A stretch of 64,000 nt of DNA, from contig BCKQ01000001.1 of the NCBI GenBank assembly GCA_001600695.1, forward strand, positions 1,178,732 to 1,242,731. Reading direction: 5' to 3'. Positions 8,933 through 59,036 of this stretch are shown in pieces (positions within the stretch are counted from its first letter, which is position 1; each line of letters starts with the position of its first letter). The translations under genes and the position numbers were made by a program. Under the pieces are notes generated by a model. The model did no database searches. It had not been told where the DNA came from and saw nothing but the letters and a program-made list of their open reading frames with translations. This DNA is from Ascoidea asiatica JCM 7603 (lineage: Eukaryota; Fungi; Ascomycota).

Positions 8933-11749
8933 TTATAATTTCCTTTCATTATTTTTTCCAAGTTCATTACAAAGATCATTAATGAATGAATTCTCCCACT
9001 TTTTATCATTTTCAAATCCTTTAATAAGCTTTTCTGCAATCCCATTATGATACCAATTTTCTTGTGAATGTCTGAAAATTTCTGCTTTATCAATATAAAA
9101 TTTGGTTGCTGTTTCTTTTCTTAAAACTTGTGTTTGTAATCCACTAATTTTACTTTTACTTCTTTTTTCATACTCATAAAGATTAGGTGAATAATCTTTT
9201 TCAAATATCATTCCTTTTTCATTAATTGTAAAATCATTTAAAATTAAATATTTCTCAATATTATCCTCTTCTTCATTTATGTTCATTTCAATTTCTACCT
9301 TTTTTTTGCTCTTTTCTTCAATTTCAATATCTTCATCAATTGATATATGTAAATTATTTAAATCAAACATTAATTCTTCTGTAAAGTCACAATCTTTATT
9401 TTCTCCAATTTCATTGAAAACCTCTTCATCAATCTTTATTATATTATTAAAGTTATTATTATTACTATCCTTAACAATTTTCCCTCTAATATGAGGATAA
9501 TTCTCTGCTTTAATAAAAGTTTTTTTGAACTCAATTATTTCTTTTTCTGGTACTCGAATTTTTCTACTCTCAAATCTTTTATGTGGTTCATCATATTTGA
9601 ATAAATTAGTACAATAATTATTATTCAATTTTAAACCTCTTGTATATAATTCAGTTCTTGTGGCATAAAAATGATGCATTCTTAAAAAATATACTGCAAA
9701 AAATCTTAATTTATTATAGTCTTTTGAATTAAACTCTAAATCATTGATAATTTTTATATTTTTACTATCCTTTTTGTTAATATCTTTATTATCATAAATA
9801 ATATTAAGTAATCCGTCAAATTCATGAATATTAAAAGGTTCTAAACAAACATGAGTAGCCATAAAATCTGAATAATATAAATATGAAACCTCAGGAAATA
9901 TATTATAAAGTAAACTTGATAATGCATACCAAAATAAATAAAATACTTTTTGAATTACTTCACTTAATTTTCTTTCTTTGGAAAGATAATTATATTTCTT
10001 ACCTGTTTCTCCTATATTATGGACATCATTATGACGAATGATTGATATATTAAAAGTTTCCGGAGGAAAAATTTGATACCATTTACTTAAAAGTAAAAAA
10101 TATACACAGCTTGGTAATTCAATAACATTTTTCTCATTTTTTGCTTTACAAGTACTCAAAAGATCTATTAAAAATAAAATTAATTTATCCAATGAAAATA
10201 ATGATTTAAATAATGGAATTCGAGAGAAATGAAATTTTAAGCTATCACCTGTATTGATTGAATTGAAAGCTTTTATTAGTAATATTTTAAAATCTTTTAA
10301 AATATTTATTACTTCATATAAAACATTATAATCAGTTGGAGTAACATAATGTCTTAATATCAAAGATAAAACCCCTTGAGAATAAAACTTGGAAATAAAT
10401 TTTGAACCTTTTGAAGGATCAAAAAAGAATTTTGCTAATGAATTCATATCTTTGAAATGAGAAATTAAATCTAAATCGTAATTGTCAAAATCTTCATCAT
10501 TATTATTATTATTGGAAGATTTATTTTCTGAGAGATTTTGATTATTTTTTATCAAATTTGAGATTGATAAATTATTATAGGAATAGTTTTTAGAATTTGA
10601 ATTAACAACTTTATGCCAATTTTCAACAAAACCTAATAACCCATTACTATAAGTATTAGCAGAAATATAAATATAATCATCATTTAATTTATTTTGATTA
10701 AAAAATAAACATCTGTGATTTGTAAAAGACCAACAAGCTATAATATCATCAAAATCACTTTTTTTATTAGTTTGTAAAGCTTCAACAGTTGCTTCAATTG
10801 AATGATCTAAATAATAAGAAGAAAAATGATCAATTATTAATAAATCTTTATCAAGCTTCTTGAGTTTTGCATTGAAATAATGTATGATTTTATTCAGAGT
10901 AGTTTCTTTATTAAATTTTTCTAAAAAGGAGACATAAAGTTTAATTTTATCCTTTAAATTTTTAAATTGAACATACAAATATTGAATACTGAAAGAAGTC
11001 AAGATTGAATTACTTAACTTATTTGGAATCGAATCAGGATTTGATAAAGTTTGTAACAAAGTATTATCTATAATATAATAGCAAATAAATCTAAATAAAC
11101 CATGAAGATCAGTTGAGTTTAATATTGGTAGAATTTTGAAAGTATCGATGGAGTAGTTTTTTGAAAAATAATAAATATGATAATCTTTTGGGTACCTTTT
11201 GACTTTGAAAGTGAACTTTTTCTTTTCTTGTTTCTTTTCTTGATTTTGATTTTGAACAGATTTTAAAATTGGAATAGAAACTGGAGTTGAAACTGAACCT
11301 TGAATTGAAACTGGATTTGAATTTTGAATAGAACTAGTAATATTCATAGGTTTCTTATGTTTAGGTGCAATTGAAACTTTTCTACTTTCATTGGTAATAT
11401 TCAGATTTGTATCAGTATTTTGCATATTTTGCGCTTTTTTGATTTTGAAAGTGTTAATTTCTTCATCAGTTAGGGAAAGATAGGAACAAGATAACAGATT
11501 ATTATTAGTAATGTTTTTTAAAATATTACTATTATACCTTTTACAATTATTACATTCAGGTAAGATTTCATCACATTTAATTCTTCTTGTTTTACACTGT
11601 TGACAACCTAATCTTGAGTTTTTATGTTTTTTTCTATATTGAGTTTTATTTCCAACTCTGAAAGAATGAAGGCCAGAATTAATTGAGTCATTATTATTGG
11701 TATTAATATTGAAATTGTTTATATTATTATTATTATTGATATTATCCAT
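8933..11749 (-). CDS. Zn(II)2Cys6 transcription factor, paralog 2
   Basis: RKKHKNSRLGCQQCKTRRIKCDEILPECNNC-x18-CSY; shared C-terminal motifs FPEVSY, YFLR, PEKEI, AENYPH. Confidence 0.9.
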   Translation of the reverse strand: MDNINNNNNINNFNINTNNNDSINSGLHSFRVGNKTQYRKKHKNSRLGCQQCKTRRIKCDEILPECNNCKRYNSNILKNITNNNLLSCSYLSLTDEEINTFKIKKAQNMQNTDTNLNITNESRKVSIAPKHKKPMNITSSIQNSNPVSIQGSVSTPVSIPILKSVQNQNQEKKQEKKKFTFKVKRYPKDYHIYYFSKNYSIDTFKILPILNSTDLHGLFRFICYYIIDNTLLQTLSNPDSIPNKLSNSILTSFSIQYLYVQFKNLKDKIKLYVSFLEKFNKETTLNKIIHYFNAKLKKLDKDLLIIDHFSSYYLDHSIEATVEALQTNKKSDFDDIIACWSFTNHRCLFFNQNKLNDDYIYISANTYSNGLLGFVENWHKVVNSNSKNYSYNNLSISNLIKNNQNLSENKSSNNNNNDEDFDNYDLDLISHFKDMNSLAKFFFDPSKGSKFISKFYSQGVLSLILRHYVTPTDYNVLYEVINILKDFKILLIKAFNSINTGDSLKFHFSRIPLFKSLFSLDKLILFLIDLLSTCKAKNEKNVIELPSCVYFLLLSKWYQIFPPETFNISIIRHNDVHNIGETGKKYNYLSKERKLSEVIQKVFYLFWYALSSLLYNIFPEVSYLYYSDFMATHVCLEPFNIHEFDGLLNIIYDNKDINKKDSKNIKIINDLEFNSKDYNKLRFFAVYFLRMHHFYATRTELYTRGLKLNNNYCTNLFKYDEPHKRFESRKIRVPEKEIIEFKKTFIKAENYPHIRGKIVKDSNNNNFNNIIKIDEEVFNEIGENKDCDFTEELMFDLNNLHISIDEDIEIEEKSKKKVEIEMNINEEEDNIEKYLILNDFTINEKGMIFEKDYSPNLYEYEKRSKSKISGLQTQVLRKETATKFYIDKAEIFRHSQENWYHNGIAEKLIKGFENDKKWENSFINDLCNELGKNNERKL

Positions 11750-43244: not shown

Positions 43245-44534
43245 ATGAATATAACAAATTTACAAGATCTTGATAGAAATGATATTCAAGATCCAATTAT
43301 TCTTAAAAATCAAATTTATAATACAAATAACAATAACAACAATAATAATTCATTACCAAAAGAAATAAAAATTGAAAATTTAAATTCAAGAGTTGGTAGA
43401 CCATTAAGAAATATAAAATATTTACCAATTAAAAAAATATCTTTTTTAACAAATAAAACAATTTTACCAAATTTTAATTATGATAAAATTAATTTTAAAA
43501 ATTTAAATATTAATGAAATTATTATTCAAATTAAATCAATTTCTTTAAATCCAATTGATTTAAAAATTAAAAATTATTTTAAATCAGATTTTTATGGTAA
43601 TTTAAAAGGTTTTGGTAGAGAATATTCTGGAATTGTATTTAAATCAAATAATAAAAATTTTAATAATGGTGATATTGTTTCTGGAATTTATTTTCATATT
43701 TTTAATAATGGTACTTTATCTTCTCATATAAAAATTAATTTAAAAATTGATCCAATTATAAAAATTGATAATTTAACTTATAATTTATTAAATTTTAATA
43801 AATTATCTTCTTGGAATTTTACTTTTATAATTATAAATCAAATTTTAAATAAAATTAAATCTTTTTATTCAAATAATAATTTTTTAGATTCTTCAAAAAA
43901 AATTTTAATTAATGGTGGTTCAACTTTTACAAGTTTAATAATTATTCAAATTTTAAAAAAAATTTATAATATTAATAATATAACTATAATTTGTTCAGGA
44001 AATTCAATAAATTTTTTAAAAAAATTTTTAAATATTAATAAAAATTCATTTATTAATTATAGAGAATTTAATGGTGATATAATTAAAAATTTAAATAATT
44101 ATTTATTAATTAATAAAAATTTAAAATTTGATATAATTTTAGATTTTATTGGTGGTTATAAAATTTTATCAAATATTTCAAATTTTATTAATAATAATAA
44201 TAAAAATTCAATATATTTAACAACTGTTGGTGATAAAAAATCAATTTATAAAAAAGATTTAATAAATTTAAATAAAAATTTAATTTTTTCAAAAACAAGA
44301 AATAATTTTAATAAATTAATTTGGGGTTTTAATTATATAAAATTTAATTATAATTTTTCAAATTTAAATGAATGTAATGAATTTTTAAATATTGGTAAAA
44401 ATTTATTATCTCAAGGTAAATTAATTTTATTTATTGATTCAATTTATAATTGGAAAGATATTCAAATTGCTTTAAATAAATTATCAACTCAACATGCAAG
44501 AGGTAAAATAGTTCTTGAAGTTGATGAATTCTAA
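43245..44534 (+). CDS. AST1: Ast1/Ast2-like medium-chain dehydrogenase/reductase-fold protein
   Basis: PKEI...RVGRPLRNIKYLPIK, LNPIDLKI, GFGREYSGIV, ILINGGST, GKIVLEVDEF match the Ast1 pattern. Confidence 0.85.
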   Translation: MNITNLQDLDRNDIQDPIILKNQIYNTNNNNNNNNSLPKEIKIENLNSRVGRPLRNIKYLPIKKISFLTNKTILPNFNYDKINFKNLNINEIIIQIKSISLNPIDLKIKNYFKSDFYGNLKGFGREYSGIVFKSNNKNFNNGDIVSGIYFHIFNNGTLSSHIKINLKIDPIIKIDNLTYNLLNFNKLSSWNFTFIIINQILNKIKSFYSNNNFLDSSKKILINGGSTFTSLIIIQILKKIYNINNITIICSGNSINFLKKFLNINKNSFINYREFNGDIIKNLNNYLLINKNLKFDIILDFIGGYKILSNISNFINNNNKNSIYLTTVGDKKSIYKKDLINLNKNLIFSKTRNNFNKLIWGFNYIKFNYNFSNLNECNEFLNIGKNLLSQGKLILFIDSIYNWKDIQIALNKLSTQHARGKIVLEVDEF

Positions 44535-44611
44535 TCCATTAACTTCATTTATATATTCATTTATTTATATATTCATTTATTTATTATTGACTATTGAAAA
44601 AACTAAAAAAA

Positions 44612-45004
44612 TTATATAAACTCTTTTATTTTAAAATTTAAATCCCTTTTATAAAAAATCCAATTATGTTTATTTTTATTTTTACTTAAAAATGGTAATA
44701 AATTTTCATTTAAATTAAAATTTAAATATAATTCTAATTGACCTAATTTATTCATTAAAATTGTAGTTGTAAAAAGAAAATCTCCTTTATAATCAAAAAT
44801 TAAACTTTCAAATAAAAATTCATCAGAAATTTTATATGAATTTTTTTTTGTTAATTTATTAAAATTTAAATCTGATTCTGGTAATGGAATTTTTGTTAAT
44901 TTTAAAGAATTTGTAAATGATAATAATAATTTTTCTTGAATTTTACTAATTTCTAAATCAAAATTTTTTTCATTATCATTATTTAATATTATTGTTGAAG
45001 TTGT

Positions 45005-45035
<31 letters not shown>

Positions 45036-46243
45036 AATGAGGAGTTAAGAGTTAAATGATTATTTAAATTTTTATAAAAAGTTTCATTCATTGGAGAATT
45101 TAATATTAATATAAAAGGTCTTATATTATTTTCATTTTCATTTTTATTATCTTCATTATCATTATTAATATAATTACCTAAATAAAAATCATAACCTAAA
45201 GGAGATAAATTATAATTTAAAATTGAAATTTTTTTATAAATTTCAGATAAAGATAAAGGTAAAATTTGTTTACAATTAATTTTATTTAAAATTTGATTAT
45301 TATTTTTAATATTAAATTGATTAATATTACATAATTTTGGTAAATGAATTGAAATTTCATAATTACAAGTTTTAAATTCTTTAATATAATTTATAATTGG
45401 ATAATTTAAATTTGAATTACATGAATAAATAATATTTGAAGATCTTTTATAATTTGTTAAATCACAATTTGTACCATGATTAATTTCTTGAATTAAAACT
45501 AAAGAATTTGAATTTGAATTTAATTGATGATTATTATTATTATTATTATTATTAATATTAATATTATTTAAATTATTTGAAGATTGAGAGATGAAATTTG
45601 AAGATAATTGTAAATTTTTTAAATTATTTGAATTATTATTAAATTTACCTAAATAATATAAAGGTAATTGAGGATCTCTTTTATGATTTTGAAATTGAAT
45701 TGGATTATTATTTAAATTTAAATTTATATCATGAAATTGAGATATATAATTATTAAAACAAAATGAATATGTCCAATAACCAGAAATATAATATAAACAA
45801 ATATTATTTAAAGTTTCATTAATAAAATTTATTGCAATTTTTTTAATTTCAGTTTCATTATAATTTAAAATATTTGAAATATTTGAAATATTTTTTTCAT
45901 TTAAATTTGATTTATATAAATCAGGTAATAAATTATATAATGGATTTTTTAAATGATTTGAAATATTTGGAAATAAACAAATAAAAGATTTATTATTTGA
46001 TAAATTAATTAAAGTATATGAATCATTATTTAATAAATTATATATATCATTTTTGTTATTATCATTATTATTAATTGAATTAAATTGATAATTAATTGAA
46101 TATTTTGGATTTGAATATATATCTTCATAAACATTAAATGAATTTACAAAATTAAGTATATAAGATAATAAAATTATTATTATTAAAGATGATGAAGATG
46201 ATGAAGATTTATATGATAATATTGAAAAGGGTATTATTAACAT
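44612..46243 (-). CDS. YOS9: ER lectin Yos9/OS-9 (MRH domain)
   Basis: Signal peptide; FNVYEDIYSNPKY; CLYYISGYWTYSFCF...QFH; GTNCDLT..KR; EFKTCNYEISIHLPKLC. Confidence 0.88.
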
Positions 46244-47078
46244 GATTATTATGACATTTATGATGATTATTAGTAAGAACTAAATGAATTAGAATGAATT
46301 AGAATGTAATTGATTAATATAATGAATTGATATTGGATATTTAATATTTAAACCTTTATTTATTTGATATATTTTATATATTTTATTTATTTGATATATT
46401 TTATATACTGTATTTGATAGAGGCACATAGATTTAGACACAGTTAATAATTGAATTAGGCAATTTAAAAAGATGAGGTGGTGAATTGAAAACACCCCGGG
46501 TTACGTAAGCAGGAGGTAAGCAGGGAGTTGAGGCCAGAGCTGTGGGTTCTCTCCACTTGAAGTGCTCAAACATAAAATTGCATTAAAGCACGTTAACCAC
46601 TTCAATGGGTCTAATCAGTTGTCGCCAGAATAACGGGGTTAGTGCACATGACCTGTCTTCTTGACTAAACAGAGAGTGGCGGTGGGAGTGGCGGCAGAGG
46701 AGAACTGCGATTGGGCAGGATGACCCCTCAGCCTGAACTACGGTGGTGATCAGTGGTGGTGCTTATCGGTAGTAGTAGTGGTAGTGGTAGTTTGCTCCCT
46801 CGAGTGCATCGCCCTTTTATCGTCCATGTGCTTTGCTGCTTGGCTTCTTTGCTTCTTTGCTTCTGTTGTTTTGTTCTTCTGGTCATGGATATTTAAACCA
46901 GAGCTGAATCATGATACGAATGGATTGATTGATTACTCTTAAATATATTCTATATCTAATATATTCTATATCTAATATACTCTTATTTATAATTGCAATC
47001 CATTTCATATTCAATCAATCAATTAATCAATAAATAAATAAATCAATTAACTAAACACTAATATAATATAATATCAAA

Positions 47079-47453
47079 ATGAGATCTCAATTCAAAGATG
47101 AACATCCATTTGAAAAAAGAAAAGCAGAAGCTATGAGAATTCGTCAAAAATTCACAGATAGAATTCCAGTAATTTGTGAAAAAGTTGAAAAATCAGATAT
47201 TCAAGAAATTGATAAAAGAAAATATTTAGTACCTTCAGATTTAACAGTTGGACAATTTGTTTATGTTATAAGAAAAAGAATTAAATTACCTGCAGAAAAG
47301 GCAATTTTTATATTTGTTAATGATATTTTACCACCAACCGCTGCTTTAATGTCAAGTATTTATGATGAACATAAAGATGAAGATGGCTTTTTATATGTTT
47401 TATATTCTGGTGAAAATACTTTTGGTAATGAGAATGGTAATATAAACATATAA
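47079..47453 (+). CDS. ATG8: Autophagy ubiquitin-like protein Atg8
   Basis: [18 protein letters not shown]...[24 protein letters not shown]...YSGENTFG plus an 8-aa tail. Confidence 0.99.
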
Positions 47454-47602
47454 ACATATAAACATATAAACATATACAATTCAAAATATACAATTTAAAA
47501 TATATCTAATAATATAAAAAAATAACTGCTCTCATGCTTCAATTCTATCTCATGTCTCCTGTTGCTTATGATTCTTCTTCTCTTCTCTTCTTCCTTTCTC
47601 TT

Positions 47603-47671
47603 CTCTATCTATCTCTATCTCTATCTCTATCTATCTCTATCTCTATCTCTATCTCTATCTCTATCTCTATC
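47603..47671. repeat. (CTATCT)n microsatellite
   Basis: Hexamer array with occasional CTAT units. Confidence 0.9.
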
Positions 47672-48021
47672 TCTTATTTATCTCTTTTCTCTTTCTGTTT
47701 CTTTCCTCGTAACTTCTGATAATAAACAAACTTCTCTTATCTCATTCTTTGCCACTCACCATCCTCACACCAGCCTTGCTTACATAACAAACACCACTTT
47801 ATTACGTACCCCATATACTAATTTCTATCCTTTAATTTCTTGATCCTTTATTTTTTATTGTTTATTGTTTATTTTTTATTGTTTAATGTTTAATGAAACG
47901 ATAAAGGAAATGATGAATTAAACCAAATGATATTCATTAATATATAAAGTATCATTCAAGGAATATCATTGGAATACTATTGGAATACTATTGGAATACC
48001 CTTAAGAACAAATATATTATA

Positions 48022-48964
48022 ATGTCTTCATTAAATTTAATAAACTTATCTGATCATTTACAATATTATTTCTCAAATAAAAATTCATTAAAAAATTATA
48101 ATATAAATTTACCAATAGATTTAATTTCAATTTCAATTTCAATTAATAAACAAAAAAAATTTAATAATTTAAAAGATAAAATTATTTTATTTTTAGAAAA
48201 AATAACTGAAAAAGTTATAAATTTTATAGAAATTTATTTAAATTTAAATAATAATTCATATCTTTTAAATTTATCAAATTTTAAAAATTGGTTTATTTCT
48301 TTTATAAATTTTACAAATACTTATAATTTATTTTATTTTAATTCAATTTCTTTAAATAATATTAATAATAATTCTAATTCAATTAATCATTCAAATAATA
48401 TAAGTAATAGTAATAGTAATAGTAATAGTAATAGTAATATAAATAATAATAATATAAATTTAAATGATTTAACTATTAATCAATTAAATGATAATATTTA
48501 TCAAATTAATAATTTTAATAATTTTAATCAACTTAATTATAATACTAATATTAATCAATTAAATGATTATACTCAATTCTCTTATAATCATTTAACTAAA
48601 TTAAATAATACAATCAATGATATTAATAATAATGATATTAATAATAATGATAAGAATTTTAATAAAAATTTGAATGAAAATTTTAATGAAAATTTTAATT
48701 CACTTTATAATTATGAAAATTATTTCATAATCTCTTCTGATTCTTTTTCTTCTCAATATTATAGTCCAATTTCTAAATTTTTTAATTATTATTTATTTCA
48801 ATTTCAAATTGATTTAAATTTAAATTTAAATTCATATTCAAATTCAAATTCTAATTCAAATTCAAATAATACTTTTATTTCAAAAAATTATAATTCAATT
48901 GATCTTAATTCAAATTTAATTAATTTTTTCACAAATATTTATATATATAAATCAATTTTAAAAT

Positions 48965-48996
<32 letters not shown>

Positions 48997-50370
48997 AATA
49001 ATGATAATAATTTAATTAAAAATTTTAATTTTAAAAATAATGTTTTAATTAACTTTAATAATTTACAAATAAATTTATTAAATTTATTAAATTTAAATGA
49101 TTTAAATTTAATTTTAAAAAATTTAAATTTTAATCAAATTATCTCTCAAAATTATTTAATTTCAATTCAAACTTTTGAAATAATTTTTAATTTATGGTTT
49201 AATAAAATTGGTCTTAATTCTTTATCTAATGATAATGATCTCAATATTGATATTGATTTTAATATTAATAATATTGATAACAATATTAATAAAAAAAAGA
49301 AGAGGAATAGAAGAAATAGAAATAGATTTAAGAAAAATAAAATGAAATTTAATAAAGAAAAAAATAAAGAAAAAGAAATTGAAAATAAAGAGATTAAATT
49401 TGAAAATGAAAAAAAAGATGGATTGAATAATGAATTAATTGAAAAAGTAATTGAAAATGAATTAAATAATGAATTAAATAATGAATTAAATAATGAACTT
49501 GATAATTCACTTAATAATTCTCTTGATAATGAACTTGATGATGTTAATAGTTATGAAAATATAGATGATTTACTTTTAAAAATGAATATAAATAAAATAA
49601 ATTCAGAAAATATTAATATAAATTCAATTAATAATAATCCAAATATTGGTATAAATCGATTATATAATGATTTTTTACAAAATAATTTTGATCCAATGAT
49701 TAATTCCCTGATTAATTCAATTACAAATTCATATGATAATATAAATTATGATTCAAATTTAAGAAGAAATTTACTTGAATTAGATATTTTAGGTTCCTCT
49801 AATTATACTACTACAACCACAAATAATATTTATAAAAGTAGTAAATATAGAAAAGAAAAGGAGAGGAAAAAAGATAAAGAAAAGAATAATTTTAAATTAA
49901 ATTTAGAAAATAATTTTAATTTTGAAAAATTTTATGATAATTTTAAAGGTAAAATTTTTCTTGATTGTTTTTATAAAATTTTTAATAATAATAATGAACT
50001 TTTAGCAGAATGTGATATATTACGTATAAGAAATTTATATTCAATATTTTATTCAAAAAATTTATTATTTTCATCAAAAAATTCAATTTATTCATCACAA
50101 AAATTATTTTCAAAAAATATTAAATATTCATTATTAAAAAAAATTCATATAAATAATTATATTAATGATCCAATAAATACATTAAATGAAGATTTAAATA
50201 AAGATTTAAATGAAGATTTAAATGAAGATTTAAATGAAGAATTTAATAAAAATATTTCTAATTATATAAATGAAGATATAATTGATTTATTAATATTAAA
50301 ATTAAAATTTCCAATTGAAGTTCCAATTCAAATTCCATTTGATTCAATTGATTTATCTAATTATTCATAA
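48022..50370 (+). CDS. Orphan Asn-rich protein with basic NLS-like patch
   Basis: Long open frame in DNA where stops are otherwise very frequent; first ATG at 48022; KKKKRNRRNRNRFKK; no recognised domain. Confidence 0.65.
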
Positions 50371-50724
50371 TTTTTTAACATTTTAATAGAAGTATTATTA
50401 TATAATAAACATTATATTTGAACTTGTAGTCAAACTGGAAATTTCTATTATTTTCTCTGTCTGTTCAATAACTTAACCCAATAAGGGTCATTAATCAAAT
50501 TCAGTAATGTTTTTGTCAGTTACTCATTCAATTACTTCATTGGATTTGCTTATTGAAAGGGATTGCAATTTGTGATTGTTCTTCAATCTCCAGGAGTTGA
50601 TTCTAAAAGTGCTTCAAGTGCTTTAAGTGCTTTAAGTGCTTCAAGTGCTTCAAGTGCTCAGAAATAAATAAATCATTTCAAATCCACAGAAAGAAATGGA
50701 AATGAATTCAAAAACGAAAACGAA

Positions 50725-50848
50725 ACGCGTCTGAAGAAGAAAAAAAAGAAAAAAAAGAAAAAAAAGAATTTTCGTGTTTTTTCGTGTTTTCGTGTTAGAG
50801 CCCTGGCGACAACTTTTCAGGGCTCTGCCTGCGTTGTTTTCTTACGCG
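50725..50848. promoter_or_regulatory. MCB/SCB cluster upstream of the kinase-like gene
   Basis: ACGCGT 50725-50730; TTTCGTG at 50770, 50780, 50788; ACGCG at 50844. Confidence 0.5.
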
Positions 50849-51220
50849 GTTGAATTGAAATGAAAATACTCGACTTTTTGTTGATGAATGTGAAATAAAG
50901 AAATAAACAAGCAAATAAACAAGTAAATAAAGAAATAAACAAGTAATCAGTCGATGAATTCATCTCAATTCACTTCAATTCATCTCAATTCATTTCAATT
51001 CATCTCAATTCCTAGTTCTCATTCAAAGCAAATACAGTGTTGAAGAGATTAGTACAAAGGAAGTAGTTCCAATGATACCAAAAGGGAAACTATAATTCAA
51101 TGACCTTTCACTCTTTAAAATCTATAATTTTGGTTTATTCCTGATAAGTTTTTTGATAAACTATTAATACATTATCAATTCAATTGTAATATATCAATAA
51201 GAAAAAGAATATAATTCATA

Positions 51221-53266
51221 ATGGATATGCAAGTGTATGGGGATATGAATATGAATATGAATATGAATATGAATATGAATATGAATATGAATATGGATAT
51301 TCAAAATGACAATAATAATAAACAAATTAATAATCAAATTGATCAAATTAATCAAAATGAGGATAATAATAAAGATAATAATGAACATTCAAATATATCA
51401 AATTTAGAAAAACATAAATTTTTATTCATCTTAACTGGAATTCAATCAATTAATAAATTATTAATAAAAAATTGTGAATGTTTTAATTTTATAAGTTTAA
51501 AATTAATAAAATTTTTTAAAGAATTTTTATTATTTAAAAATTTTAAAATTTTTTTTTTACAAAATTCTTATTTTATTTCAAATTTTGAATATATTTATTA
51601 TTTTTTATCTTTACCAAATTATTCAAATCTTTTATTTAATTCAATTATTTATAATTTTAATGATTCTCCATATGATCAACCAAGACAAATTTGGAATCCA
51701 ATTAATAACCTTTTATTATCTAAAAAATTTAAAATTTCTTCAATCTCAAATAATTCTAATAATTCTAGTGATATAAGCAATGATATAAGCAATGATAATG
51801 ATAATGATAATGAAGAATCTTTAAATATAAAAAATGATAATAAAAATAAATTAAAATCTAGAAAACTTTTAAATATTCAAAAAATGAATCTTTTAAATGA
51901 ATTTCATGATATTTTACCTTCTTTAAATTCAATCAAAATTCAAAATTCTCATATTATTAATATTATTAATCATTTTCTTTTCTCAAATGATATTAATAAC
52001 TTAAATAACTTAAATAAATTAAATAAATTAAATAAATTATTTAAATCTTATATTATTAATAATTTAAATAATTTAAATAATTTTAATAAATTTAATCTAC
52101 AATTTATAAATAAAAATAATTTTAAAAATAATTTAAAAAATTTCTTAATAAATTTCTCATTTAAACCAATTTTAATCATTTTAAATAATATAAATATTAC
52201 TAATAATAATATAATTCAAAAAAAGAAAAAAAATGATATAGTTTTTTTAAAAAATTTTCAAAAACGTTCTTTAAATAATTTAAAAATTGATGGATGTTTT
52301 TTAATTAAAAGATCTTCAATATTATTAATTCAATTTAAATTTAATAATGAAATTTCTTTATTAAAATTTGCTTTTAATAATAATTTAAAAAATAATTTTA
52401 AAAATTTACAAATCATTAGTCATATTTTAAAAGAAGCAATTTATTTTTGTATTATTTTTAAATGTTCAAAAATTTTATTAATTGATCAAAATGAATCAAT
52501 TTTTTTAATTATGCCTTCAAATATTATAAATAATAATAATAAAAAAAATAAAATAAATACAATTACAAATAATAAATATACAAAATTATATTCTTTTAAA
52601 GAAATTTCTTTTACATATTTCATATTATCTGAATTAAATTTATCTTTAAATTTTGCTTTAATTTATATTTTATCATCATCAATATCTTCAATTCATAAAA
52701 AATCAAATAAATATTATTTAAAAGATAAATTAATTTTAAAAAATTTAATTTTTTTAGAAAAATATATAAAATTTTCAAATTCAAATGAACAAAAATTTGT
52801 TTTAAAAAAAAATGCATTAAATTTTGCAGCTTATTTATATTTTAATAAATTTAAAAATTCATTATTAGTTTTTAAAACTCCATTAAAAATTTTAAAAATT
52901 TTACAATTTAAACCTGGTAAAGGTCAATTAAGTGAAGTTTTTTTAATTTCAAATGAAAATTTAATTCAAAATAAAAATATAAATTTTGCAATAATTAAAA
53001 TTTTTGATCCAAATTATTTATGTGATTTTAAATTAAATTTATTAGAATTAAAAAATTATTCACCAATTAAAGAATCAAAACATTATTATAAATCTGCTTC
53101 TAAACAATTTTTTAAAGAAGTTGAAGTTTATGATAAATTAAAACATCTTCAAGGTGATATTATACCTTATAAATTATCACAAGGTTATATTGAAACAAAA
53201 GTTATAAAAAATAATATTGAATATGAAATTAGTGGATTATTTATTGTTATTGAATATTGTTTATCA

Positions 53267-53306
<40 letters not shown>

Positions 53307-53590
53307 TACAAAATAAAAAAGCTTTATCATTAGGTTTAAATAATCTTGAAATTTTACATTCATATAATATAGTTCATGGAGATATTAAAAGAAATAATTT
53401 TATTTTAATTTATGATGAATTTAATAATTTAGATCAATTTATTTTTATTGATTTTGGATTAGCAAAAATTGATGAAGAAGCAACAAATGAATTAAAATTA
53501 GAAGATATAAATAATTTAATTCATTCTTTTTTTCCAACAGCTCTAGATGTTAAAGAATTATGTTATTGTTTTGAAAATTTAAACAAATAA
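51221..53590 (+). CDS. Atypical protein-kinase-like protein (C-terminal, truncated C-lobe) with a putative central PD-(D/E)xK-fold domain
   Basis: GKGQLSEVF, AIIKIFD, EVEVYDKLKHLQGDIIP, FIVIEY, LHSYNIVHGDIKRNNF, FIDFGLA. Centrally KIDGCF-x-LLIQFK and EAIYFC...KILLIDQNESIFLI. Kinase fold is confident, nuclease fold tentative. Confidence 0.8.
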
Positions 53591-53851
53591 TTTATATATT
53601 CTTTAAGTTTTTATATAAAATTGCATTACTTTTTTTTTCCATTCCTCTTTTTTTAAAACTTTTAATAATCTTCAACTTGTATTCTACTTTCCTAATATTA
53701 AATCACTATTAATGTACGTCTAGTAAACTCATCTTCAATGATTATTTCAAAAAAGTTATGTAATAATGTAATAATGTAATAATGTAATAAATAATATAAT
53801 AATAAAAATAAAGGTTTATTTTATATTTAATTGAAATTAGTGAAAAAATCC

Positions 53852-53923
53852 TGCCTTTCAAGGGAATCGAACCTGGGTTTCTTTGGCCACAACAAAGTGT
53901 ACTAAAAACTATACGAGAACGGC
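53852..53923 (-). pseudogene. Degenerate tRNA-His(GTG)
   Basis: Reverse complement GCCGTTC TC GTAT AGTTTTTA GTAC A CTTTG TTGTGGC CAAAG AAAC CCAGG TTCGATT CCCTT GAAAGGC A. Anticodon arm is intact, but D-loop GG is TT, 3 of 5 T-stem pairs are broken and the acceptor stem has a G:A mismatch. Confidence 0.8.
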
Positions 53924-54197
53924 TAATTGATGAAATTCGCGAAAAAACATGAATTAAGAAACACTATACACTTTTTGATGTAAATATCATGTGACTGGTC
54001 ATGTGATCTGCTTTTTTTTTGAGGATTGAAATTTAATTTGTTGGTTGAAAGAGAAAATGAAGAAGTGAAATAAATAAAGATTGAAATGAAATGAATTGAA
54101 TTGAATGAATGGACTTTAATGGACTTTAAGGGAATTGATATTATGTTTGGAGTAGAATTATTGGAGTAGAATTATTGGATAAGAAATAGATATTAAA

Positions 54198-55079
54198 ATG
54201 TTTAAATATTCAATTAAGAAAGAAATGAATAATATCAAAAATGTTAATAAATTGTCAATATTAAATTTCTCACGTTCATATAAAATTTCAATTAAAAAAG
54301 ATTTAAATAAAAGTAATAGTAAATTGAATGGTTTATTAAATATAAAAACAAAAACGAATAGTAATTATAATAATAATAATAATAATAATGGAGAATTAGA
54401 AAATATTAAGAAAAGAATAACTTTAAAACCATTAGAATCTAGGAAAACATTTTTAATTGATTTTTATAAAGAAATTTTTAATAATGATATAATTTTATTT
54501 TTACATCATAATAATTTAACAAAATTTGAGAATAATAATTTTAGACATGAAATTTTAAAAATTACTTCAAATGAAGGTAATTTACATATTATTAGAAATA
54601 ATTTATTTAAAGTTTTTTTAAAAAATCAAAATTTAAAAGATCCAGCTGGTTTAAGAAATGAAAAAAATACAATTAAAAAATCTATTGAAAAAGACAATAA
54701 TAATAATAATAATTTAAATTATAAGAAATTAAAGAAAATTATTAATGGACCAACATGTATAATAACATTTAAAGAGAATAAACCTGAATTAATTAAGAAA
54801 TTAATTAATAAATTTTTAATTAATACAAATGAAAAATTAATTTTAATTGGAGGTAAAATTGAAGATAAAATTTATAATTTAAAAGATTTAAATAAATTTA
54901 AATTATTAAATAATAAAATTCAATTACAAAATGAATTAATTGGATTATTAAGTATTTTAAGTGGAATTGGATTAATTAAAACTTTACAATCAACATCAGA
55001 AAATTTATATTTAAATTTAAAAAGTCATGAAGATAATATTAATTCAAAAAAAGATGTTGATGTTAATGAGATTAAATAA
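54198..55079 (+). CDS. MRPL11: Mitochondrial ribosomal protein uL10m
   Basis: Basic presequence; KPLESRKTFLIDFYK, LFLHHNNL, IIRNNLFKVFL, NGPTCII, LIGGKIE, LSILSGIGLIKTLQS...LYLNLKSH. Confidence 0.9.
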   Translation: MFKYSIKKEMNNIKNVNKLSILNFSRSYKISIKKDLNKSNSKLNGLLNIKTKTNSNYNNNNNNNGELENIKKRITLKPLESRKTFLIDFYKEIFNNDIILFLHHNNLTKFENNNFRHEILKITSNEGNLHIIRNNLFKVFLKNQNLKDPAGLRNEKNTIKKSIEKDNNNNNNLNYKKLKKIINGPTCIITFKENKPELIKKLINKFLINTNEKLILIGGKIEDKIYNLKDLNKFKLLNNKIQLQNELIGLLSILSGIGLIKTLQSTSENLYLNLKSHEDNINSKKDVDVNEIK

Positions 55080-55149
55080 ATATATAAAATAAGTAATTGA
55101 ATATGTATGTAAATAGACTATTATAATAAACTAAAATTATATTTTATCT

Positions 55150-55189
<40 letters not shown>

Positions 55190-55228
55190 ATATAATATTG
55201 TAGTATATAGTAGTATAATTGAGAACGT

Positions 55229-56041
<813 letters not shown>

Positions 56042-56564
56042 TTATTATTTACAAAGTAATTTGATTAAAAGAAATATATATTATATATTATATATTATAT
56101 ATTATATTATATTGACATTAATATATTCAATTGAATTGAGTTGATTGAAATGAAATGAAATGAAATGAAATGAAATAAGATTTGTTCTGGGATTGTTTGG
56201 AAAATGATTTGTAGAAACGAGCGAAGAAAAAGGAACAGAGGAAAAACAGAGAAAAAACAGAGGAAAATGAAGACAGGACCAGAGGAAGGGGACCAGAGGA
56301 GGGAGGGTACCACTACCACTGGAGCGGGAGAGAGACCCCGGGTGGTCAGGTGACGGCACGTGAGGAGTGTGGTGAGGCAGAGGGTGCAGCGAAGTGCAGA
56401 CACTAGGTGAGACCAGAATAGTGGCACTCCTTTGATCTCAAAAATACCAGTCCGATGGGTCGCTGTGCAAGTATGTTTGATATACCTGGCAGTACTCACC
56501 GGTACATTGCATCCATGTGCCTGGTTCCAGATACGTAGTTCAATTTCCACTGGAAACAATCCAC

Positions 56565-56621
<57 letters not shown>
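56565..56621. repeat. (AGT)19 microsatellite
   Basis: Perfect trinucleotide run bordering the GC-rich ADK1/MSC2 promoter island. Confidence 0.95.
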
Positions 56622-56622
<1 letters not shown>

Positions 56623-56987
56623 TATTAATATATTACTCGCTTTTAACTCCAATAACCACTTTTATCTATTTTATCAATTTTATCAATTTTATCAATTTAC
56701 TCGAATCATCTGAAATATTTATTCAATGTTCCAATAAGAATAATAAGAATAGTAAGATAAATAAATAACTATATTCATTGTCTATTATTCAATTCAGTTA
56801 TTCAATCATAATCATCTAATATTATAATCATTTACAAGTTACTCAATTCAATTCAATTCAATTCAATTCAATTCAATTAATTCAATTCAATTCACTTTTA
56901 ATTCAATTTATAATCAATTTATAATCTTCTTTTTGCATTCGTATTTCTATCTTATTTAATTCAATCAAATCTTCATATATTCTAAAA

Positions 56988-57680
56988 ATGTCTGATTCTG
57001 ATCATTCTCATTCTCATAATCATAATCATACTCATGATCATGAACATGAACATTCTAATGACCATTCTCATTCTCATAATGATTCTAATATTCATGATGA
57101 ACATAATGAACAAAATGAACATAATCAATTCAATTCAATCTCAATTCCAGTTCCTGATAATTTAAATAATTATAATATTAATATTACTCCAATTAATCAT
57201 AATCATATTCATAATCACTCTCATAATAACTCTTATAATACATTCTCAAATACAAATTTCATAAATCCTACAAATATTTATAATCTAAATAATTCAAATG
57301 ATATAGATCTTAATAATACTAATAATTCAAATAATTTAAATAATTTAAATAATTTAAATAATTTTTCAAATCATTTAATAAATTTCTTTAATTATTTTTT
57401 ACCATTTATAAAAAATAATTATTTTTTTAAAAATTATATACAATTTAATTTTTTTTTTTTAAAAAATTTATTATATAATTTATTCTCAAATAATGAAACA
57501 AAATCAATAACTCAATTTTTAATTTTAAATTTTCTTTTTATGATAATTCAAATGATTTATTCATTTAAATCAAAATCTTTAGGTTTATTCTCTGATTCTT
57601 TACATATGTTATTAGATTGTTCTTCATTATCTATTGGTTTATTTGCAAAATTTGTTTCAAAAGAAAATAAAAGTATTTTT

Positions 57681-57726
<46 letters not shown>

Positions 57727-59036
57727 TATCTAATAAGTTATCTAATAAAAATTCATTAAAATCAACTTCAACAGATTTAAATAATTTAAATTCAAAAAAT
57801 GATATTTTATCTCAAATTTTAATATCAAAATATCCTTTTGGTTTATCAAGAATTGAAAATTTAGCTGCTTTCATTAATGGAATTTTATTATTATCAATTG
57901 TTCAAGATATTTTTTTTCAATCAATTGATAGAATCTTTAATCCAGTTTCTTTAATTAATATTAATCAATTATTAATTGTTTCAACTTTAGGTTTATTAGT
58001 TAATTTAATTGGAATTTTTGCTTTTAATCATGGTCATGATGGTCATTCTCATTCTCATTCACATTCTCATTCTCATTCTACTTCAAATGAACAAAATAAT
58101 AATAATAGTAATAATGACGATAATATGCATGGAATTTTTTTACATATTTTAGCAGATACTTTAGGTTCTGTTGGAGTTATTTTAAGTACATTATTATTAA
58201 AATTTTTTCCATATTTAAAATTCTTAGATCCAGTTTCTTCATTATTTATTATTGGTTTAATTTTTTTATCTTCTTTACCATTATTAAAAAATTCATGTTT
58301 TAATTTATTATTAGTCTTAGATGATAATGAAAAAATTAAAATTAATAATAATAATGGTTTTAATGAAAATAATTATCTTAATGCAGAAACTTTAATAAGA
58401 GAATTATTAAATGATTTATATGAATTACCTGGAGTTTCTAATTATTCTGTTGTTAGAATTTGGAAAGATACTGAATGTGAAGGTACTCATGATAATAATA
58501 ATTGTGATAGTGATGATGAAGATTGTACTATTGATTGTGATTCTGATAATGAAAATGATAATGAAAATGATCATAACCATAATCATTCTCACTTAAATGA
58601 AGAAAACTCTCATAAAGAATATTCTAACGAAGAACATTCTCATTCTCATAATTCAAATATAAAAGATACTCATACTAATAGTAATATACATAATCATAAT
58701 CATAATCATATACATAATCATATACATAATCATATACATAATCATGAAGAAGATCATGAACATACAAATGATGCAAATAGTAGTAATTTAATTGGATATA
58801 TTCATATTCAATATTTAGATGGAGAAAATTCAACAATTATTAAAAAAAGATGTGAGAAATTAATTTTTGAGAAATATAGATTGAAATTATTTATTCAATT
58901 AGAAACAGAATCAAGTAATTGTTGGTGTAGAAATGGAACAATAAATCATCATCTGAATAGTAGTAGTAATAATAATAATAATAATAACAGTAATAGTTTT
59001 TTAAGAAAAAAGGAAAATTCTTCAATGTTTTTATAA
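56988..59036 (+). CDS. MSC2: CDF-family zinc transporter (Msc2/ZnT5-7 clade)
   Basis: FLILNFLFMIIQMIYSFKSKSLGLFSDSLHMLLDC, YPFGLSRIENLAAF, His loop, NMHGIFLHILADTLGSVGVI, GYIHIQY.DGENSTIIKKR, CWC. Confidence 0.9.

Follow-up and report, generated by a model that had tools for sequence, protein, structure and literature searches.

A candidate family of nuclease-like kinase fusion proteins in the budding yeast genus Ascoidea

In a stretch of 64,000 nucleotides from Ascoidea asiatica JCM 7603 (contig BCKQ01000001.1, positions 1,178,732 to 1,242,731; hereafter the window), we analyzed a gene at window positions 51221-53590 on the plus strand, whose 789-aa product joins a conserved central domain to a C-terminal minimal kinase. 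The sequences suggest that it belongs to a new protein family, in which a nuclease-like domain and a minimal kinase are arranged like those of the restriction endonuclease (REase)-kinases of the Spok and Crinkler types. The explanation that we tentatively favor is a kinase-controlled, nuclease-like host factor. Its first module would be a conserved alpha/beta domain, either a nuclease or derived from one and directed at nucleic acids, which takes a QxK form in the window copy. The second would be a catalytically complete minimal kinase, with an N-lobe motif like that of eukaryotic-like kinases (ELK), an HGDIKxxN loop like that of eukaryotic protein kinases (ePK), and two helices after DFG. The first module may be controlled by the protein's own kinase, which is the design principle of Spok and Crinkler REase-kinases, and the window copy would be a domesticated or otherwise host-serving factor, probably expressed at G1/S, and not an active meiotic driver.

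The reading frame and its relatives

The gene is a single uninterrupted frame of 789 aa plus a stop codon, for which no intron is necessary. Its G+C content is 13%, as opposed to about 22% for the whole 64-kb window. Since a stop codon is expected about every 9 codons at this composition (per-codon stop probability 0.109), 789 stop-free codons would arise by chance with a probability of about 2e-40, and no other open reading frame (ORF) of 80 aa or longer overlaps it. The protein begins with MDMQVYGD, followed by Met-Asn repeats and then an Asn/Gln-rich stretch; because the repeat supplies many in-frame ATG codons, the true start is ambiguous within 51221-51304. A Pfam search with the full-length protein gave no match, probably because the low-complexity inserts mask the signal. 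The features of the gene outside the central domain are as follows.

51221-53590, plus strand: whole ORF, 789 aa plus stop (open-frame statistics, motif script)
51221-51304, plus strand: N-terminal Met-Asn repeat, (ATGAAT)n (translation, repeat family)
52886-53587, plus strand: minimal kinase domain, aa 556-789 (Pfam, PDB phmmer, family profile)
52916-52999, plus strand: Gly-rich loop GKGQLSEV (aa 566-573) and beta3 lysine K593 in AIIK (script, family alignment)
53117-53167, plus strand: alphaC-beta4 motif EVEVYDKLKHLQGDIIP (aa 633-649) (script, family alignment)
53264-53310, plus strand: poly-Asn insert (AAT repeat), between hinge and catalytic loop (repeat analysis, paralogue alignment)
53375-53458, plus strand: catalytic loop HGDIKRNN (aa 719-726; D721, N726) and DFG (aa 744-746) (script, alignment, PDB matches)
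53459-53587, plus strand: brief C-terminal tail (43 aa) containing two predicted helices (model, family alignment, script)

Relatives were sought with HMMER, using the whole 789-aa protein against 1.84 billion cluster representatives, and three matches were returned. P0001 (1e-12) comes from Ascoidea rubescens, is annotated as a protein kinase domain protein of 285 aa, and carries a precomputed PF00069 match. P0002 (1e-5), a protein of 244 aa, contains GKG, HGDVRMQN, and DFG and is encoded on a 2-kb contig from run SRR26954463; this contig ends 20 nt upstream of the P0002 ORF, so that any central domain ahead of the ORF would lie beyond its end. The third match, P0003, a 550-aa kinase with a long C-terminal extension, was put aside as an ordinary kinase match. 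No further members came from word-indexed searches, for which the queries were aa 330-789, the kinase alignment, and the central-domain alignment; these returned only generic kinases matching at the catalytic loop, as did a metagenome scan with the kinase alignment.

The earlier note on this DNA had proposed a survey of copy number, and our search of the A. asiatica genome itself (20.3 Mb in 71 contigs) identified three members: the window copy and two paralogues of 1258 and 630 aa, about 30% identical. In the 1258-aa paralogue, on contig 11 (331905-335681; L008:3906-7682), both modules match the window protein in the same order, the central domain at 3e-12 and the kinase at 5e-23. Under the stricter regime of BLASTP with SEG masking and composition adjustment, these two matches stand at 7e-7 and 2e-18, respectively, while the kinase of the 630-aa paralogue is matched at 1e-7 and the central piece from A. 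rubescens at 1e-8, with 49% identity over 37 aa. The N-terminal likeness between the window protein and a paralogue is marginal (a SPY..P..NP motif, E 0.025). Where the window protein has its poly-Asn insert, the 1258-aa paralogue has a different and longer one; this paralogue also has a long disordered acidic/basic N-terminus and a catalytic loop reading HEDIKEDN, and is without a Gly-rich loop. The 630-aa paralogue, on contig 12 (L016:1450-3342, minus strand), was found by the kinase profile at 6e-18 and has an ELK-type catalytic loop, HGDLSPGN, with DFL in place of DFG. Judged from these sequences, the family is so far lineage-restricted, comprising three old paralogues in A. asiatica, the A. 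rubescens homologue, and the P0002 contig.

In A. rubescens, the homologous locus lies on KV454490.1 (L009:8500-10884). The annotated kinase, ASCRUDRAFT_72367 (285 aa), spans the kinase alone and is the end of a longer gene, as the central domain is found upstream of it in other frames (L009:9231-9716 and 9692-10039). The frame changes at a G run around 9690 and at a 20-nt tandem duplication around 10013-10052. The A. rubescens copy is either broken or mis-assembled; we used its pieces as separate references and did not join them. Further upstream at this locus, there is an HHRSYS repeat with an assembly gap. The A. rubescens neighbors, encoding VTC and myosin-I, have 66-70% identical genes in A. 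asiatica, but these lie at other loci and there is therefore no microsynteny. Identity at this level would place the window sequence within the wider Ascoidea lineage.

Might the window gene be a neutral relic, a once-functional gene that drifts in an AT-rich and slippage-prone genome? The heavy low-complexity inserts (Met-Asn repeat, poly-Asn, and N/K-rich loops), the G+C content of merely 13%, and the two frame breaks in the A. rubescens homologue would all suit such a history. However, the 789-codon frame has stayed intact in spite of its stop-prone composition, the catalytic residues of the kinase are all retained, the conserved blocks coincide with predicted secondary structure, and the promoter contains a structured cluster of elements. 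We therefore regard a relic as very improbable.

The C-terminal minimal kinase

The C-terminal 239 aa of the protein match the Pfam Pkinase model with an E-value of 5.5e-6 and 26.4 bits, which does not reach the gathering score of 31.7. With phmmer, the same segment matched PDB chains of VRK1 and CK1 at 2e-4 to 1e-3, and a profile of the family's kinase domains retrieved VRK1, Chk2, CDPK, and CK1 from the PDB at about 5e-7. Because these three lines of sequence comparison agree, we take the kinase fold of the C-terminal module to be real. The residues that the earlier note had listed were all located by a script where it had placed them: in the kinase, GKGQLSEV at 566, AIIK at 590 (K593), HGD at 719-721, and DFG at 744-746, with the motif E.VY.KL..LQG.IIP, that is EVEVYDKLKHLQGDIIP, starting at residue 633.

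The window protein thus has the Gly-rich loop, beta3 Lys, alphaC Glu, HGD...N, and DFG of a complete catalytic core. The window protein, both paralogues, the A. rubescens homologue, and P0002 all retain the beta3 K, alphaC E, HxD, N, and the D of DFG. The alphaC-beta4 motif, E..Y.KL..LQG.IIP, is likewise kept in all five family members, in which its E, Q, and P are invariant, and LKLxDIN.L in the kinase tail is conserved across the family. After DFG, no APE motif and no full C-lobe (helices F to I) are found, and all family members end in a short tail; in the window protein this tail runs to 43 residues past DFG, close to the figure of about 45 given previously. Matches of the family in PADLOC fall exclusively on the kinase parts (PD-T4-6 and MkoA).

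In Pfam, the 630-aa paralogue matches RIO1, Kdo, and APH, passing the gathering score of RIO1 and nearly reaching that of Kdo. On the strength of these scores, the kinase is assigned by sequence to the ELK-like type, the type also assigned to Spok (PMC6660238). Weak profile matches include archaeal Bud32 proteins, and the window kinase has in common with Bud32 and with Rio1/Rio2 the pattern E...L..L..G..P, an HGD loop, and a very short C-lobe after DFG that lacks APE. What sets the family apart from these kinases is an N-terminal extension of 550 aa and, for three members, the ePK-type Lys in HGDIKxxN. It had been suggested that a single-copy orthologue in a known kinase family such as Bud32 or Rio would argue against a Spok-like gene. 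We found that the genome has its own RIO1 and RIO2 (C21:59793 and C1:2144705, 2.5e-57 and 6e-41) and a Bud32-like gene (C7:721193) elsewhere; the window gene is therefore not the orthologue of any of them.

The central domain and the nuclease question

Upstream of the kinase, a second block is conserved among the window protein, its paralogues, and the A. rubescens homologue, and contains the following features.

52151-52690, plus strand: conserved central domain, aa about 311-490, common to the two paralogues and A. rubescens
52280-52342, plus strand: predicted beta-hairpin, aa 354-374 (D357, Q371, K373), the proposed PD-(D/E)xK-type motif in its QxK form (script, model, alignment)
52406-52510, plus strand: helix, aa 396-412, and strands KILLI and IFLI, aa 417-430 (model, alignment, masked BLASTP)

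Here, too, the residues described previously were recovered by the script: IDGCF at 356 (D357), QFK at 371-373, EAIYFC at 405, and KILLIDQNESIFLI at 417. The shared pattern consists of a YFEP-type segment, a strand starting from D357, an (E/D/Q)xK strand, a helix that begins with a conserved glutamine (Q397), and two strands. The helix and the KILLI/IFLI region form the best-conserved central stretch, with 49% identity to A. rubescens. The motif itself varies: it is the canonical D...ExK in A. rubescens (IDGCF...ILIVEAK), DxK in the 1258-aa paralogue (ILLIDFK), and QxK in the window protein (D357-x13-Q371-F-K373), with the K kept in all three proteins. The conservation of the central domain is statistically supported at the level of sequence, whereas the motif alone is weak evidence. 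As modeled, the hairpin-helix-strand pattern, together with the D...(E/D/Q)xK motif, fits a PD-(D/E)xK core, whose fold is alpha-beta-beta-beta-alpha-beta. E. coli Mrr, a type IV restriction enzyme, uses the D...QxK variant of this motif.

Several results weigh against a nuclease identity. The central domain found no PD-(D/E)xK match in Pfam, PDB profiles, PADLOC, PHROGs, or NCBIfam, and the Pfam Mrr_cat model (PF04471) matched no family member. When the family core (Neff, the effective number of sequences, 1.8) was compared by hhalign with a Mrr_cat alignment of 29 sequences built from 29 bacterial genomes, ILLIQFK was paired with the QxK strand of Mrr, but the match was insignificant (E 0.56) and covered only 11 columns. 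AlphaFold models were of low confidence: the predicted local distance difference test score (pLDDT) was 35 for aa 330-789 (single-sequence) and 47 for aa 216-500 (4-row alignment), the core of the latter reaching 53-69. In that core, the modeled order of elements is strand-strand-helix-helix-strand-strand. Foldseek searches of the PDB gave a best E of 0.5. In the structural comparison with VIA, a helical hairpin of low confidence accounted for the wide list; in a second look, the best matches over the core were DHHA2 domains with Z about 5 (top 5.3), which is at noise level, and REase-like chains (9y1l, 6okh, 1wdj, 3ot2, 3k93, and Rai1) appeared at Z 3.3-4.2, within the noise. The restriction endonuclease fold that the earlier note had anticipated for this region thus drew nothing significant from profiles, hhalign, AlphaFold with Foldseek, or VIA.

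The proposed catalytic residues are also inconstant. The first D is a K in the 1258-aa paralogue, the acidic position is E, D, or Q, and no ExK could be placed in the 630-aa paralogue, whose central domain is the most divergent. In addition, a degenerate kinase N-lobe is another possible reading of the pattern strand-strand-K-helix-E-strand-strand, which hhalign of the core against the family's own kinase profile (E 0.6) did not support either. Separately, one ORF of the genome, at C5:1062101-1062421 (L020) in an open frame of 293 aa, passes the Pfam Mrr_cat cut-off with 30.7 bits and is unrelated to the nuclease-like/kinase family.

These observations bring in a plainer explanation, in which the protein is an orphan minimal kinase and the central domain has a lineage-specific role in regulation or targeting, with an unrelated fold or as a dead pseudonuclease. 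The D...QxK would then be coincidental or vestigial, and the conserved activity would be phosphorylation, for example of a cell-cycle substrate. Such a kinase would account for the invariance of the kinase catalytic residues across the family beside the variability of the putative nuclease residues, and for the failure of any tool used to return a nuclease family or fold; a promoter of G1/S type, described below, would also suit a cell-cycle kinase. It fits less well with the conservation within the central domain, the best-kept part of which is made up of the motif K, the Q-helix, and the two strands, or with the fully canonical D...ExK in A. rubescens. Neither does it predict that the central part alone should point to SPOK2_N clusters, as it does in the language-model comparison below. 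We consider the orphan kinase possible but on balance unlikely, and retain the kinase-controlled nuclease-like factor as our working explanation.

Relationship to Spok and Crinkler proteins, and the probable role of the gene

The closest architectural parallel is with the Spok proteins of Podospora. SPOK3 consists of an N-terminal coiled coil, a domain 1 of unknown function, a PD-(D/E)XK domain (K240, QxxxY), a Cys/His cluster, and an ELK-like kinase (D667) (PMC6660238). Spok killing requires the nuclease, while resistance requires the kinase and the Cys cluster (PMC6660238), and the SPOK1 D680A mutant kills E. coli and yeast via DNA damage (PMC9972908). The window protein resembles SPOK1-4 in the order of its modules, namely an N-terminal part, a domain with a PD-(D/E)xK-type motif, a linker, and a short ELK-like kinase (PMC6660238), and also in size, which is about 750 aa in Spok. 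In a protein language-model comparison, the neighbors of aa 330-789 were fungal Kdo/APH/Pkinase clusters, some with SPOK2_N; for aa 216-500, SPOK2_N was the only named family among 30 neighbors (score 0.91, 173 shared features). This SPOK2_N (PF27653) neighborhood is the only positive pointer to Spok, and we treat it as a lead only.

The differences from Spok are considerable. The HMMER search returned no Spok-like protein, so that sequence homology to Spok is undetectable by this method. The C-x3-C-x13-C-x5-H-x7-H cluster that precedes the Spok kinase is absent; the earlier note had not seen it either, and after C415 there is indeed no Cys in aa 416-599 of the window protein. The Spok QxxxY lies about 54 aa past the K, whereas the window protein has QIISH 23 aa past its K and no QxxxY in the domain; the residues after the conserved Q397 are IISH in the window protein, IISN in the paralogue, and LVSN in A. 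rubescens. Spok has ExK where the window protein has QxK, and the catalytic loop of the window protein (HGDIKRNN) is ePK-like, unlike that of Spok. The paralogues of the window family are, moreover, ancient and lie outside any mobile block, again unlike Spok. The likeness to Spok is therefore one of module layout, and two defining features of Spok, the Cys cluster and QxxxY, are absent. The earlier proposal of a kinase coupled to an upstream PD-(D/E)xK domain, as in Spok and Crinkler proteins, is supported by the minimal ELK-like kinase, the conserved central domain, and the ExK of A. rubescens; the REase fold is so far unsupported, and QxxxY and the Cys cluster are missing.

Crinkler proteins offer a second parallel. 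About one sixth of Crinkler C-termini combine an REase with a kinase (PMC5289972), and CRN8 of Phytophthora infestans, for example, likewise couples an REase-superfamily domain to a protein kinase (PMC5289972). For such Crinklers, PMC5289972, citing Zhang et al. 2016, attributes the presumed toxicity to the nuclease and a presumed regulatory role to the kinase. This likeness is again one of layout; the CRN8 kinase is full-size and that of the window protein is minimal. Neither a Crinkler header (Ubl/LFLAK) nor a secretion signal is evident in the window protein, on inspection of its N-terminus and with no header found by Pfam. Given this and the Met-Asn-repeat N-terminus, the sequence suggests that the protein is presumably intracellular.

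The region upstream of the gene contains a cluster of elements resembling the Swi4-Swi6 cell-cycle box (SCB) and the MluI cell-cycle box (MCB), about 370-500 nt upstream of the ATG.

50714-50848, no strand assigned: G1/S-type element cluster (motif counts)
50714 and 50720: ACGAAA
50725-50730: ACGCGT
50770, 50780, and 50788, minus strand: CACGAAA, three copies
50844-50848: ACGCG

The cluster holds three of the six CACGAAA and one of the two ACGCGT in the 64-kb window, in which ACGCG occurs 8 times against 1.8 expected. By analogy with the SBF and MBF sites of S. cerevisiae, this SCB/MCB-type cluster suggests expression at G1/S. Both paralogues are without such elements upstream, and no MSE- or URS1-like core (MSE, middle sporulation element) was found in the promoter of the window gene. 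The repeats around the gene are confined to low-complexity families, none of them transposon-like, terminal, or long; ARAGORN found no tRNA in window positions 44000-58000; and each of the three copies sits well away from the ends of a large contig. Also in the intergenic region upstream, a 9-nt unit, AAGTGCTTC/T, is repeated in tandem five to six times at positions 50598-50658 of the window. The upstream neighbor (47980-50370) is a 796-aa Asn-rich ORF with no Pfam match that consists mostly of 12-nt slippage repeats.

These surroundings bear on whether the gene could be a still active element of the Spok type, conferring both killing and resistance from a single gene and acting as a meiotic driver or a self/non-self factor. 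The nuclease-like domain would in that case damage the DNA of cells or spores that do not carry the gene, and the kinase would protect the carriers. The domain order is as in SPOK3 (PMC6660238), the family is multi-copy in one genome and non-syntenic between species, the A. rubescens copy looks broken, and the taxonomic distribution is very patchy, all of which would fit an active killer. By contrast, the paralogues are only about 30% identical, and there has therefore been no recent spread. Transposon, repeat, and subtelomeric contexts are all absent; the Cys cluster needed for Spok resistance, as well as QxxxY, is missing (PMC6660238); a Q stands in place of the acidic residue; and the promoter has mitotic G1/S elements without an MSE- or URS1-like core. 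An active killer thus appears improbable.

There is also a bolder version, to which we give little credence: together with the copy in A. rubescens, the three paralogues would form the first Saccharomycotina branch of the Spok-type single-protein toxin-antidote class, in which a QxK/ExK nuclease domain would damage DNA and its own minimal kinase would neutralize that damage, with at least one copy still acting as a killer and resistance gene, in drive or incompatibility, in a yeast of the Ascoidea lineage. Since the copies are old, lie scattered in mid-chromosomal positions, and show no marks of mobile elements, and since the window copy has an SCB/MCB-type promoter, a host function is more likely than active drive, and the kinase-controlled nuclease-like factor would be host-serving.

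Single-protein fusions of a nuclease and a kinase underlie the Spok meiotic drivers and a large class of Crinkler toxins, both outside the budding yeasts. No paper in the literature that we searched links either type of fusion to Saccharomycotina, in agreement with the earlier note, which knew of no characterized example there. The family also exemplifies how very AT-rich, fast-evolving genes can escape family annotation, as the full-length protein is blank in Pfam. A budding-yeast family of this layout would be a tractable system for studying the control that a kinase exerts over a nuclease-like domain in the same protein, and an assay by expression in S. cerevisiae has already been established for SPOK1 (PMC9972908). 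The family would also show whether nuclease-kinase modules lend themselves to domestication as host genes under cell-cycle regulation.

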